A stretch of 64,000 nt of DNA, taken from contig NC_043014.1 of NCBI RefSeq assembly GCF_006345805.1, forward strand, positions 4,960,001 to 5,024,000. The letters run 5' to 3'. Position 1 is the stretch's first letter; each line of letters begins with the position of its first letter. Below are positions 3,567 to 62,404 of the stretch, in pieces. The position numbers and the translations under genes are program-made. A model generated the notes under the pieces. It did not search any database. It had not been told where the DNA came from and was given only the letters and a program-made list of their open reading frames with translations. Source of the stretch: Octopus sinensis. Its lineage: Eukaryota.

Positions 3567-4063
3567 TCAATATTTACTGCATACAACGCAGGTTAATTCT
3601 TGACCATTGACATACGGTGGACATGGCAACGAACCACAAGCAGCCTCAACGAAATATAATAAAGCTCCATTTTCGTCTCTGTAACCTGCTGGATCAGCTT
3701 CTGGTGCATAATCCACACAAACATATTCATGTCTGCCTTTATGATTATAATGCGCGGTCATCAAATATCCCGAATACTCAGCTGTCCAACCAGCGTAACA
3801 CTGTGTCCTGGCTGGTAACATCATAACAACAGAAGGTTGTCGTGTCAAACAGACAGCGCACGGAACGTTGTGTTGATGAAGTGATTTAGCGTTAGCAAAA
3901 GAAAAGAGTTTATTTGAGTAGTGGGATATTTCATATTCACTGCCATAAATGTAACCACCTTCTTCAACTTCTGTTGTATAATTGGCCCAAATGGGGTCGT
4001 TAGGTAAACACAAGAGATTACTTCCACCACCTGTGTGGTCATAAAATTGTCCACCAACCACAC
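3567..4063 (-). CDS. Copy 1 last exon: spongin short-chain collagen-related / collagen IV NC1-like (C4) domain
   Basis: Acceptor ttctag at 4064-4065, phase 1. Reads VVGGQFYDHTGGGSNLLCLPNDP..HNVPCAVC..PARTQCYAGWTAEYSGYLM..YVCVD..GALLYFVEAACGSLPCPPYVNGQELTCVVCSKY*. The Cys pattern and two-fold internal repeat match the family commonly annotated 'short-chain collagen C4-like'. Confidence 0.9.
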
Positions 4064-4326
4064 CTAGAATTGGTAAGAATAAATCAAGTAAAAAAAAGAT
4101 AATAAGAAAAATTATATATGAAATAACGGAAACATTCATTACAATTTTTCACTTAAAAGAAGTCATGTTTACTCGCGTGTGAACGAATTGTGGTGTATAT
4201 ATTAGTGTTTACGTGAGTGTAAGCTGTGTGTTGCTGTATGCTTGATATCATAGCTGTGCATTTGCATTCTCTTCATATATATATATATATATATATATAT
4301 ATATATATTTCGAAGTAAGCAACAAG

Positions 4327-5316
4327 GATATCCAGAGATAATGCAGTACGATTGTTTCATGCAACTCCATATAATTGAACAATACAATCATTAAATCAAT
4401 TTAAAATATAGAGCAATCTTCAGCTGCACAAATACATAGGATATAATTAAATTAAAACAGATTGACAAATTAGTATAATTATACCTAAAATCTCAAACAA
4501 GTTAAGGAGATACACAAAGAACATGTCTCTACTTCAGCATAGAAATTAATAAAATTATCAAGAAATTTATGAATACTTATGAATAGAAAAAATATTCAAC
4601 AATTTCTATCCTTTTGTTATAATATTCTTCTAAATAATACTTTGGAAAACCCTAAACTTCAACTGTATTCAAAGCAACATTGTTTAAAATATTTAACTAT
4701 AATATATGATAAGACCTTCCGTTTCATTGTCAATAGTCTGCCAGTGTGCGACCCCCTTAATTATCATCTAACACCTTGTTTTAAGTTTTCCCTTACTAAA
4801 CCTCATGGTATTGCTTATAATAATTCTTGATTATTTTATAATTATACCAACTACAATGTCTATCTACTGCCTGAGCCCTCCCCCTATTATTATTGCTTAT
4901 AATAATTCTTGATTATTTTATAATTATACCAACTACAATGTCTATCTACTGCCTGAGCCCTCCCCCTAACAGATACTGCCCTATGTTCTCTCAGCCTTAG
5001 ATATACAAAGGATTTGTAAATTAGTCTATAAATTAAAACTGACACCATAAAGACAAATAATCAGTGGTAAGCTGAGTCTTCTTGATAATTTTAGTAACTG
5101 CTATGCTGAAGTAGAGACAACATGTTCTCTGTAATATCTGTAATATCTTGGAAATTTTAAGTATAATTACACAAATGTGTCCATCTGTTGTAATTTAATT
5201 AAATCCGACATTTTTGCAGCTGAAAATTGCTCTAAATTTTAAACTGATGTAATGATTGCATTGTTCAATTAAATGGAGTTGTATGAAACGAACGTACTGC
5301 ATTATCTCTGGATATC
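4327..5316. repeat. Long inverted repeat: arms 4327-4564 and 5079-5316
   Basis: gatatccagagataatgcagtacg...aaaattatcaagaa is mirrored on the opposite strand at roughly 80% identity. Confidence 0.8.
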
Positions 5317-59102: not shown

Positions 59103-59562
59103 ATTCAACAATATACGGAATGGCCATAATAGGACATTCGACTCACTAGAAAGAGCAGCCAAACTCAAACCTTTAATTAGTTGTAATTCTGAAATAGAAA
59201 GGTAAATAAAAACGGTTACCCCTTTCATCTCTGGACTATGCATAGTTTCTGCAAACTTTGTAAACAAATTAATTAAATTAAATATAGTTACATCTGGCGT
59301 GCCTCGTCAGCAGAGAAGCCTATGATGAGTATATGTCCACGAGGCGATGGTAAAGAAGCCTCCAGTCCATATGCTCTAAATTTTCAAAATTCTACCGCAA
59401 TCGCGATGTCTTCTCAGCAGCAAATATAAACTGCTGCTTTAATTTCAAAATTAGCCAAAAAATCATTAATTAATAAATATTAGGGTATTTAGCGGTTTCA
59501 GTTTGGCTGCGCTTTCAAGTAAGTCGAATGTCCTATTATGACCATTCCTTATATTGTTGAAT
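59103..59562. repeat. Inverted repeat, 69-bp arms (59103-59171 / 59494-59562), in a unit-4-specific insertion
   Basis: Six mismatches in 69 bp by eye. Confidence 0.8.
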
Positions 59563-62260
59563 ATATATATATATATATATATATATATATATATATATAT
59601 ATATATATATATATATATATATATATATATGTATATATATATATATATTTACATGTATATATATAGTTAAATTTAATCCAAACAAGAAAGCACAAAAATA
59701 CAACAACGCGAGGACGTGGAACAAATATAGTATTATTGGACGCTCGGGAAAGAAGGACCGAAGGAGGGTTTAACGTTTCGGGTGGAGTTCTTCGTCGGAA
59801 ACATACGAGAAAGAAAGATACAGAGGAGGGAAGACAGAGGAAAAAAAATCACCAACGGTACACACGCGGCCACATTTTGAATGACCGGAAGGAAATGGGT
59901 GAAGAAAAGTTCTTTCAAAGACAGGAGAGTGGTAGAGGAGGAGGTATGTGTGTGTAAGTGTGGATAAGAGCGTGCGCGGAGGTCTGCGTGTGTGTGTCTG
60001 TGTCTGTGTGTATGCGTGCAATGATGACACGTGTGTGTATGTGTGTTGTGGCTGTTAATCTTTGCGTGTTGTAGGGCTAGTAGTGTTAAGAAGAAGGAAT
60101 TGGGCGTGGCTACTTTTGACTCTACTACCTGTTAAGTAGTAGGTTTTGCTAGTTTGAAGAATGTGGGTGTGTGCGTGTATTGTGTGCGGATGATACGTAT
60201 ATCTCTGTGATGACCGTCGAAGACCAGGCTATCAGTTGTTGCTACATATCGCTGGTCACAATGCGCTTCGCGTTGTTTTAGCCTTCAAATGACGCCACCC
60301 CGTTGGCTAAGCGAGCAGGCCAACAGAAGAAAGGGAGAAAGGTATAGCGAAAGAGTACAGCAGTGATCATGGAGCTTTAAACACACACAACGACCAGTCT
60401 GGGAATCGAAACCGTAATCCTATAAACGTGAGTCCGCTGCACTAACCACTGTGCCACTGCGCCTCCACTCAGACATATATATATATATATATATATATAT
60501 ATATATATATATATATATATATATATATATATATATATAATATATATATATATACATATATATATATATGTGTGTATATAAATATATATATAAATACATA
60601 TCAATATATAGGTATACACGTACACATAAGCATACACACCATAAATATCACAAATAGACGTATCTACTTATACGCATACACACACAAAGGCACACATATA
60701 TGTGAGTGGACATACACTGTATAGTGTGATTGTTCGTGTACAATTGAGCACGTGTGTCTGTGTGCGTGCGTATGTGTGTGTGTTTGTGTTTATTTGTGCG
60801 TGTGTTTGCCCGTGTGTCTGTGTGTATGTATTTACATTCGTTCTTACATATTGTCATATATAAAAACCAACGTGAATTACAGTCAAACATTACGAAATTC
60901 ACCGATCTACATTGGCACTCGCACGTTTTATTTTAAGTTGGAAAGAAAAGATTAAAAAAAACTCGCCTCACTTCCGTTCCTGATGGAGAGAAATAGATAA
61001 ATGTGTGTAAATATGTACGTATTCCTATGTGTGCGTGTGTGTGTATGTTTCCATGTGTCTGTTTCTGTGCGTGTGTGTAAGTGTACATCTAGATATAATA
61101 CTTAACACTAATATTAATAGGGCTAAACGTTGCAGCCACAGGGCATGGCCATGCTAGGAACCCACCATTAGATTTTTTTCATTACGCACTTATTTCCCTT
61201 TCCAGGATTATGTCTGGTGAAAGAGCGATCGGACAGGAGTACAATTCCACCCTTCTTTGTGTTTCCTTCGGATGTGTGTATATGTATGTATATATATATA
61301 TCTATATATATATGTATATCCATATACACACACATATATATATATATATATAGATAGATAGATAGATAGATAGATAGATAGATAGATAGATAGATAGATA
61401 TGTAGATAAATAGATTGATAGATAGACATGTATGTACATAATTACGTAACTATATATGTGTATATGTATATATGATATGTATATATATGTATGGATGTAT
61501 GTGTGTGTATGTATAGCACACATAGTGTGTGTATAGCACACATAGTGTGTATGTATCTATGTTTTATGTATGTGTCTGTTATTGTCGCACCACTATCGAT
61601 TCTCAACTGATGTCGTTGTTTTTACATCCCCGTTACATAGCGGTTCGGCTAGAGATATCGATAGAATGAGCAATAGGCTTTCAAAGAATAATTCCTGAAG
61701 TCGATTTGTCCTACTAAACGCAGTGCTCTAGCATTGCTGCAGTCAAATGACTGAAACGGGTAAAAGAATATATTTATATACAAACAAACACGCACGCACA
61801 CACACACACACACACACACACACACACACACACACACATACACACATATATATATATATAGATAAATGGAGAGAGAGAGAGAGAGATAGACAGAGAGATA
61901 CAGTGATAGATACACAGACGCATATATTTGTTTGTATATATATATCTATATATGTTCAGGCACTAATATATTCATATATATGTATATTATAGATACAAAT
62001 ATACGTATATGTATATATATGTATCCTTAGGTCTGTGCGCCTGTGTGTTCGTGTGTGATTACGTGTGTGATCTTATGTGTGTGTGTGTGCTTCATAGGAA
62101 CATATGTCCGTGATTCATGCATACATCCTTACATCCATCCATCCATCCGTACGTACATACATCCACATATTAATACATACATACGTAAATGCATACGTAC
62201 ATACATGCATATATAAATACATAAAGACATACATATATTAACACAAAATCCATGACTTAC

Positions 62261-62404
62261 CGTTTTCGATTTCTCTTCCATTTTTCCTATTCTTGAATCT
62301 TGATGAAGAATCACGATCGTCAGAACGAGAAGAACCCCAAAAGCTATGAGAGAAGAAATGGAATAACGCTGCGAAATATTCCTGGACAGTTGTGCGAAAT
62401 CCAT
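62261..62404 (-). CDS. Copy 4 probable first exon (signal anchor)
   Basis: 144 nt, identical to copy 1; two substitutions lie just upstream of the ATG. Confidence 0.7.

Follow-up and report, generated by a model that had tools for sequence, protein, structure and literature searches.

We analysed a stretch of 64,000 nucleotides from Octopus sinensis (NCBI RefSeq assembly GCF_006345805.1, contig NC_043014.1, positions 4,960,001 to 5,024,000), called the window below, whose minus strand carries four tandem copies of a gene for a cysteine-rich protein related to spongin short-chain collagens. The window is AT-rich eukaryotic DNA with abundant microsatellites. An earlier reading of the letters (the original prediction) had described this locus as a tandem family of collagen-less, probably membrane-anchored proteins, in which an NC1-like domain bears four hypervariable windows on an invariant scaffold, and had interpreted it as a recognition or adhesion repertoire. 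Here we report the structure of these genes, the fold predicted for their products, and the way in which the variable windows appear to have diversified.

The exon structure was obtained by tblastn of the Octopus vulgaris orthologue (P0001, 256 aa), mapped back onto the window. Four units of ~15 kb each, spaced by ~14.2–19.7 kb, were found on the minus strand, each of them consisting of one four-exon gene with GT-AG at all junctions and a spliced product of 255–256 aa containing ten Cys. Exon 1 (144 nt) encodes the N-terminus, a hydrophobic segment and the start of a stalk, and is identical in the four units at 48/48 residues; exon 2 (52 nt) encodes the charged stalk; exon 3 (75 nt, PGLGSLYTRWGRTTCPPYSNLVYDG) provides the true start of the globular domain together with the first Cys; and exon 4 is 497–500 nt long. 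The four minus-strand open reading frames (ORFs) of the original prediction (3567-4139, 19263-19601, 33334-33831 and 53004-53501) were found at these places, and each of them turned out to be the last of four coding exons; exons 2 and 3 had been missed. The ten Cys ascribed to these ORFs are correct for the spliced product, but only nine of them lie in exon 4, the tenth being in exon 3. Similarly, the proposed anchor exon does contain a hydrophobic segment consistent with a type II anchor, but only 62261-62404 of the ORF at 62129-62404 belongs to it, and it is present four times. The exons and variable windows are as follows.

14727..14870, minus strand: gene 1 exon 1, 15-residue N-terminus, hydrophobic putative anchor and stalk start MDFAQLSRNISQRYSISSLIAFGVLLVLTIVILHQDSRIGKMEEKSKT (tblastn 48/48; GT donor)
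9439..9490, minus strand: gene 1 exon 2, 52 nt, charged stalk NRFISKKSLDDKPDDTP (AG/GT)
6577..6651, minus strand: gene 1 exon 3, 75 nt, start of the NC1-like domain GSLYTRWGRTTCP with the first Cys (AG/GT)
3567..4063, minus strand: gene 1 exon 4 and stop codon, NC1-like domain with nine Cys
4035-4046, 3951-3974, 3912-3932 and 3741-3758, minus strand: gene 1 variable windows
29185..29328, minus strand: gene 2 exon 1 (putative anchor; tblastn)
24832..24883, minus strand: gene 2 exon 2
21262..21336, minus strand: gene 2 exon 3
19104..19603, minus strand: gene 2 exon 4, broken by an in-frame TAA at 19263-19265
19575-19586, 19491-19514, 19449-19472 and 19278-19295, minus strand: gene 2 variable windows
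47368..47511, minus strand: gene 3 exon 1 (putative anchor; tblastn)
42688..42739, minus strand: gene 3 exon 2
35501..35575, minus strand: gene 3 exon 3
33334..33833, minus strand: gene 3 exon 4 and stop codon
33805-33816, 33721-33744, 33679-33702 and 33508-33525, minus strand: gene 3 variable windows
37924..37974, minus strand: extra, diverged exon-2-like copy NRVISKKSCDDKPDDTP, spliceable, inside gene 3 intron 2
62261..62404, minus strand: gene 4 exon 1 (putative anchor; tblastn)
58144..58195, minus strand: gene 4 exon 2
55232..55306, minus strand: gene 4 exon 3
53004..53503, minus strand: gene 4 exon 4 and stop codon; protein 98% identical to O. vulgaris P0001
53475-53486, 53391-53414, 53349-53372 and 53178-53195, minus strand: gene 4 variable windows

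The exon-4 ORFs of the four copies were 73–86% identical in protein. The original prediction had counted four paralogues with all Cys kept, which stood as far as the scaffold and the Cys codons are concerned. The frame of gene 2, however, is interrupted, its sole defect being the TAA at a codon that reads GAA in the other copies; the frame and the Cys codons downstream of it are kept. Gene 2 is probably a pseudogene or a truncated allele, and the TAA itself may be polymorphic, may mark a recent pseudogenisation or may have come from an error in sequencing. Gene 3 is ~4–5 kb longer than the other units, and the segment 35634-38049 in its intron 2 is an older duplicate, 72–79% identical, of the intron-2/exon-2 region at 40596-42739. 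The same intron holds SLLDQLCCPETVNIVLPSKT (40587-40646), which is used as a 5' exon by RefSeq O. sinensis models of anchor-less isoforms and of which degenerate copies were found in intron 2 of genes 1 and 4; such models may reflect genuine alternative starts or may be artefacts of annotation.

The family extends far beyond the window. Eight loci around annotated relatives in O. vulgaris and O. sinensis, 379 kb in total, were fetched, and at least 21 further complete exon-4 copies, plus fragments, were found in them, located on chromosome OX597833.1 of O. vulgaris (11.08–11.70 Mb) and on chromosome CM016876.1 of O. sinensis (3.97–6.55 Mb) at a density of ~1 copy per 15–18 kb of sampled DNA. 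Together with the four copies of the window, these 21 form the set of 25 copies used below, in which 24 have an open frame. The tandem family of the original prediction was thus extended from four units to a much larger array. Since the region is rich in microsatellites and difficult to assemble, collapsed or duplicated haplotigs imitating a tandem family were considered as an explanation. However, the units differ from each other by ~8–22% in alignable non-coding DNA, with different indels, so that they represent real paralogues and not an echo of the assembly, and comparable arrays are present in two independent assemblies at chromosome level. On these two grounds an assembly artefact was rejected, and we regard its probability as practically nil. 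The window is 94–97% identical to the best-matching stretches of the loci sampled from O. vulgaris (GCA_951406725.2) and O. sinensis (GCA_006345805.1), and an exact look-up of the three intact spliced proteins gave no match in a collection of 15 billion proteins.

The spliced protein consists of a 15-residue N-terminus, a hydrophobic segment at about residues 16–33, a charged, proline-rich stalk of ~38 residues and a domain of 185 residues. The hydrophobic segment (ISSLIAFGVLLVLTIVIL) is of transmembrane length, with a Kyte-Doolittle value of 2.67 over 19 residues from residue 15, and shows no evident cleavage motif (no obvious small-x-small site). It is conserved in Octopus and Argonauta, and in cephalopod members of the family it begins at residue ~15–21. 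The anchor ORF matched no Pfam family. This hydrophobic helix would represent an uncleaved type II signal anchor by which the C-terminal head is displayed at the cell surface. The most likely orientation, as predicted from the sequence, is N-in/C-out, because the C-terminal domain, which needs disulfides and carries an NYT sequon, would have to be luminal; across 65 homologues nine Cys were invariant and one was nearly invariant, and the NYT sequon, which the original prediction had seen in its four copies, was kept in 25/25. No recognisable signalling module was found in the short N-terminal tail. The protein resembles a ligand or adhesion molecule on display more than a receptor that signals.

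Regarding the collagen tract, the stalk contains no Gly-X-Y, and translation of the 64 kb in all six frames gave no run of at least five Gly-X-Y triplets, in agreement with the original prediction. The longest Gly-X-Y run was 0–3 triplets in cephalopod homologues versus 11–19 in amphioxus and other homologues, in which N-terminal signal peptides occur alongside these triplets. A structural collagen was rejected because the Gly-X-Y tract is absent. Bivalve homologues have no Gly-X-Y either; some of them begin with a classical signal peptide followed by a helical stalk, others with an anchor. In collagen-less bivalve members (P0097, P0100 and P0084), a charged, apparently helical segment such as ERLIRIEFAQREVEATLAEFRERF lies between the signal peptide and the NC1-like domain; this segment might form a coiled coil and, as a trimerising stalk, take the place of the collagen triple helix.

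A phmmer-type search with copy 4 gave 231 related proteins, including many from O. sinensis, O. bimaculoides and Argonauta. The best of them was an O. vulgaris protein of 256 aa with 98% identity (UniRef 'Short-chain collagen C4-like'); expectation values (E) reached 1e-108 for octopus proteins of this name, and amphioxus relatives with PF01391 collagen repeats were found at E 1e-47 and 53% identity. A family profile collected 4820 cluster representatives at E <= 1e-3. Some of the predicted public proteins (among P0121-P0151) contain 3–9 spongin-type NC1 domains and are up to 3949 aa long; these probably arose by fusion of gene models along tandem arrays. If so, invertebrates would seem to have multiplied this domain in tandem commonly.

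For the O. vulgaris orthologue of gene 4, a model was computed by AlphaFold2 on a 65-sequence alignment. It had a mean predicted local distance difference test score of 83.8 and showed a long N-terminal helix (residues 16–52) and a beta-rich domain that begins at residue 72 and runs to the C-terminus. When this model was compared with the PDB by Foldseek, the best 33 matches were all collagen IV NC1 (E 8e-7 to 2e-2, probability 1.0 for the top 26), and the matches after these were unrelated and non-significant. We also aligned the family with human alpha1(IV) NC1, a query confirmed to be identical to PDB chains, by hhalign (E = 2e-4, probability 47%), which gave 48 columns at the subdomain junction, containing a CAVC...CxxGW...GY core. 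A full-length alignment of low confidence placed shared anchors at the start (TR...CP), in the middle (CAVC) and at the end (CxVC). As far as the predicted structure tells, the octopus domain is the collagen IV NC1 fold in its spongin-type version, and the NC1-like domain named in the original prediction was supported at this level.

The variable strings quoted in the original prediction were found exactly in all four copies. For copies 1 to 4 they read FYDH, NFDK, HYTH and LYSH in variable window 1; TEVEEGGY, AKGENAGW, TEDEKTGY and TGDTKSAY in variable window 2; EISHYSN, QLQSYDTN, AIVLYPSN and QLELYPTN in variable window 3; and TAHYNH, SSNHEE, TERHSH and SGHYGH in variable window 4. Copies 1 and 4 differed at 31/166 aligned residues, 12 of which lie in variable windows 2 and 3, as had been noted. 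Among the four copies, 24 of 27 columns in the variable windows were variable, compared with 22 of 139 elsewhere (Fisher p = 2.6e-13), and multi-nucleotide changes, also pointed out earlier, made up 52% of the differing codons in these windows versus 15% elsewhere. The same pattern was observed in the 21 copies that had not been used to define the windows, where the average entropy was 1.61 bits in the windows and 0.29 elsewhere (Mann-Whitney p = 4e-14). Over all 25 copies, 81/166 columns were invariant, and two extra single hot positions were found outside the windows, in CY-x-GW and A-x-CGS. In the monomer model the variable windows fall in predicted loops, as foreseen, that flank beta strands (after strands 85–95, 130–134 and 185–194, and before strand 130–134).

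The divergence of these loops was then compared with that of neighbouring DNA. In the four copies of the window, the p-distance at the three codon positions was 0.44, 0.32 and 0.37 in the variable windows and 0.08, 0.05 and 0.13 in the scaffold, and it was 0.067 in the last 150 nt of the intron. The last 150 columns of the upstream intron were taken as the yardstick, 300-nt flanks having given distances inflated by microsatellites. Across comparisons, all three codon positions of the variable windows ranged from 0.32 to 0.46, whereas scaffold third positions ranged from 0.10 to 0.13. The four loops and a few single positions thus diverge 3–5 times more than neighbouring third codon positions or the intron.

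A mosaic origin of this diversity, unforeseen in the original prediction, was evident from loop cassettes that are identical at the nucleotide level in paralogues otherwise different. For instance, variable window 4 of gene 1 (TAHYNH) equals that of an O. sinensis copy whose variable window 3 matches gene 2, that of gene 3 (TERHSH) equals that of an O. vulgaris copy otherwise like gene 1, and three O. sinensis copies share the cassette TEYYKH. Three near-orthologues of gene 1 differed by 3.5–8% in the flanks and 5.5–7% in the exon, and in one near-orthologue pair 13 of the 35 differences fell in seven codons of variable window 4. Between gene 4 and its O. vulgaris orthologue, a whole-codon swap (TTA -> CAC) was observed at one of the hottest sites. 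In addition, separate trees for four exon segments improved the M0 log-likelihood by 562 units for ~147 extra parameters. In the pairwise homoplasy index (PHI) test, 0/2000 permutations reached the observed value for all copies, and likewise for O. sinensis alone, the test being weaker for O. vulgaris alone (84/2000). Such identical cassettes in otherwise different paralogues indicate that short-tract gene conversion reshuffles the members of the array.

Selection on the loops was evaluated in several ways. By the Nei-Gojobori method, pooled dN/dS (the ratio of nonsynonymous to synonymous divergence) in the variable windows was 1.42 for the four copies of the window, and variable window 2 alone gave 2.16 in the 21 other copies. 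The scaffold had an omega of ~0.26–0.29, that is, purifying selection. Site models were fitted with our own codon-likelihood code (F3x4, neighbour-joining trees, branch lengths fixed at M0, naive empirical Bayes posteriors). With one tree, M2a was favoured over M1a by a likelihood-ratio test statistic (LRT) of 121.6, omega being 3.9 for 9% of sites; when four segment-specific trees were used, the LRT was 38.7 (p = 4e-9) and omega 2.9 for 6% of sites. The LRT was 43.5 for M7/M8 and 34.1 for M8a/M8, with 10% of sites at omega 2.4. These models, all with p below 1e-8, favoured sites in variable windows 2, 3 and 4 as well as both of the hot positions outside the windows. Moreover, when the synonymous rate (alpha) of the loops was fixed at the scaffold value, their nonsynonymous rate (beta) was 1.61 times the scaffold synonymous rate and exceeded 1 at p = 1e-5.

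Taking these results together, we suggest that the array may be a diversified surface repertoire for recognition or adhesion, with a self or foreign partner, a reading on which our own judgement is evenly balanced. According to this model, the loops would be reshuffled among array members by short-tract gene conversion, and the uncleaved hydrophobic helix would display the disulfide-rich head on its ~38-residue stalk. The head would probably trimerise, by analogy, since NC1 domains trimerise, and the variable loops would form its specificity-determining surface. Because the loops stay far more diverse than the adjacent scaffold and intron, we infer that their homogenisation is selected against, selection thereby keeping loop diversity.

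Several results weigh against this reading. As to the fold, no Pfam family, including C4 (PF01413), matched exon 4 at E <= 1 or the spliced protein at E <= 10, a profile hidden Markov model compared with PDB sequences gave chance matches only, and the Foldseek template-modelling (TM) scores were modest (0.28–0.41). As to the orientation, the charges flanking the hydrophobic segment are balanced, +1 on each side. As to selection, the original prediction had expected dN/dS above 1 in the variable windows; this held for the copies of the window and for variable window 2, but the pooled ratio over 25 copies, as in the copies other than these four, was 0.85–0.90. The pooled ratio is near or below 1 because synonymous change is also raised in the variable windows (synonymous divergence ~0.57, versus ~0.21 in the scaffold), which in turn is raised because imported cassettes carry synonymous and nonsynonymous differences together. 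When the synonymous rate of the variable windows was left free, alpha was 1.91 and beta 1.63, giving a beta/alpha of 0.85, not different from 1. With site-specific rates, both fitted by grid search, only four sites had beta > alpha at p < 0.1 and 50 sites were under purifying selection; the hottest sites also showed high synonymous rates. Within-segment recombination can still inflate the site-model tests. The comparison of site models (M7 vs M8) proposed earlier was strongly significant under constant dS, and models with free synonymous rates left four nominally significant sites. Evidence for positive selection is model-dependent: the loops outpace every neutral yardstick nearby, but their nonsynonymous positions show no detectable excess of change over their own synonymous ones.

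The pooled ratios, the beta/alpha near 1 and the synonymous rates of the hottest sites are what one would see if the loops were unconstrained, that is, if an ordinary structural or matrix protein descended from spongin short-chain collagens had diversified by neutral drift and gene conversion, playing no part in recognition; the family is indeed annotated as collagen-related and occurs in structural or adhesion contexts in other taxa. On the other hand, loop divergence at 3–5 times that of nearby synonymous and intronic sites, and at 1.6 times the scaffold synonymous rate, is unexpected under neutrality, and neutral conversion tracts would homogenise the loops together with the scaffold. In addition, the absence of a triple-helix tract and the predicted membrane anchor speak against a fibrous matrix role, and the open frame is kept in all but one of the sampled copies. 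We therefore consider unconstrained loops unlikely.

Another possibility is that the loops, rather than recognising foreign ligands, lie at interfaces of NC1 monomers or trimers and set which chains co-trimerise or which heads pair between cells, as a homophilic code of assembly or self-recognition like that of clustered protocadherins. NC1 domains of collagen IV select the chains that enter a trimer, and two trimers join head-to-head as a hexamer. The residues ~83–93 of alpha1(IV) adjoin Met93, a partner in the sulfilimine cross-link where the two halves of the hexamer meet. Variable window 3, which lies ~18–25 residues before CAVC, is equivalent to these residues in the full-length hhalign alignment, itself of low confidence. 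NC1 has itself been termed a 'recognition module' (Fidler 2017, PMC5395295). Many co-located paralogues with shuffled cassettes would also fit a combinatorial code. However, the alignment outside the CAVC...GY core is unreliable (probability 39–47%), and interface residues are usually constrained to co-evolve and are not freely shuffled; an assembly code seems to us distinctly unlikely.

The only protein-level trace found for the family is one peptide of another member in the ink of O. vulgaris. This peptide would fit shed or secreted bioactive proteins (in ink, mucus or a venom-like secretion) engaged in an arms race with predators, prey or microbes, in which the anchor would act only as a signal for secretion or processing. 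An invariant leader, a hypervariable mature domain and a conserved flanking intron are typical of toxin-type gene families, and the octopus genes, with their invariant leader exon, resemble these; the classical signal peptides of the bivalve homologues point in the same direction. Nevertheless, the ~18-residue hydrophobic segment begins at residue 15–16 without an obvious small-x-small cleavage site, the ink peptide belongs to a different paralogue, and the ink gland is holocrine, so membrane proteins may reach the ink. Shed proteins are, in our estimation, very unlikely. The surface repertoire favoured above may also be cast in a more specific form, in which dozens of anchored trimers with gene-conversion-reshuffled loops would constitute a germline-combinatorial, somatically invariant system of cell-surface identity or non-self recognition on the NC1 fold, acting by head-to-head pairing between cells or with foreign surfaces; this we offer as a speculation, itself quite unlikely to be correct.

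Other features of the window were also recorded. Blocks of (ACAT)n/(CATA)n microsatellites, 340–630 bp long, mark the boundaries of the units, each exon 1 having such a block immediately upstream. Unequal crossing-over could use them as substrates and so make the array grow or shrink. Their positions are:

172-608, 1161-1687, 16897-17416, 30375-30869, 48571-49201 and ~63100-63700: microsatellite blocks

A repeated plus-strand ORF of 105–163 aa occurs in intron 2 of the units (8706-9131, 37327-37644, 42080-42481 and 57403-57894). It reads MKCALLVPLLT...GRLLFVDD.LLPDS.DG.QQ...KAGLTNTH.VGKWNII..., has no Pfam match, and is probably derived from a repeat or a transposable element. In the extra segment of the gene 3 intron, a minus-strand ORF (39423-39728) with the motif PYSPDIAPSDFHIFRPLQ adjoins (TA)n and (TATC)n arrays; this ORF, which gave no significant Pfam match, seems to resemble mariner-type transposases in their C-terminal part. 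Between units 3 and 4, the spacer contains a C/A-rich 92-bp tandem repeat (3.4 copies, 49559-49866) with an adjoining valine-run ORF (50279-50581), and is the only spacer with a strongly negative GC skew (−0.46). Scans of the window for tRNA and Rfam families gave no match.

Public octopus genomes already carry annotations of the family, and the homology of spongin-type proteins to NC1 has been published. No description of a collagen-less, anchored architecture in cephalopods, of arrays of this size, of hypervariability in four loops or of cassette exchange was found in the open-access papers searched. Even if the function proves mundane, these genes show cleanly how dN/dS tests are confounded when gene conversion is mosaic.

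Among known systems, the closest are the spongin short-chain collagens, or 'short-chain collagen C4', reportedly described by Exposito in 1991 and by Aouacheria in 2006. The spongin-type NC1 has ten Cys, seven shared with collagen IV and three spongin-specific, and no HSQ motif (Fidler 2017, PMC5395295). The octopus C-terminal domain is clearly homologous to theirs in sequence and likewise has ten Cys (matched by count) and no HSQ. The octopus proteins differ in lacking any Gly-X-Y domain, in having an internal hydrophobic putative anchor instead of a signal peptide, and in having multiplied into a large tandem array, in which four loops are hypervariable and cassettes are exchanged. With the NC1 of collagen IV (PDB 1LI1, 1M3D, 5NAX and 8TYS), the octopus domain shares the predicted fold by Foldseek, the CAVC and CxxGW...GY anchors and, in the low-confidence alignment, those at TR...CP and CxVC; unlike it, the octopus domain has ten Cys instead of 12 and ~185 residues instead of 229, and is without a Pfam C4 match, a collagenous chain or identifiable sulfilimine residues. 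A standalone NC1 gene, of the collagen IV type, has been reported only in Ctenophora (Fidler 2017, PMC5395295). Like it, the octopus genes encode an NC1-type domain without a collagen triple helix, but they are of the spongin type, predicted to be membrane-anchored, and multiplied.

Resemblances of another kind are seen in the C1q/TNF-type expansions and FREPs of molluscs, which show variability in loops, and where collagen-stalked and type II anchored versions exist within one superfamily. By analogy with these, the octopus family would combine a lineage-specific tandem expansion, a compact disulfide-stabilised and probably trimeric head, and loop-focused variability; its fold is unrelated. 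The membrane collagens XIII, XVII, XXIII and XXV, and other type II proteins whose C-terminal heads are trimeric, have long collagenous segments and are encoded by single-copy conserved genes. With these, the octopus proteins share, as predicted, a short cytoplasmic N-terminus, a single anchor and an extracellular C-terminal domain, whereas the octopus genes have no collagenous segments and are multiplied. NC1 is familiar from basement-membrane collagen IV and from spongin short-chain collagens, where it is the module for assembly; in the octopus genes it occurs without the collagen rod, apparently tethered to the membrane, in large arrays on one chromosome, with loops diversified by duplication, point change and cassette exchange. 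If these loops bind partners, they would provide cephalopod immunology or cell-recognition research with a concrete, testable gene set, and NC1 would take its place as a new scaffold among the few diversified recognition families of invertebrates, beside FREPs, C1q-domain proteins, Sp185/333 and Dscam.

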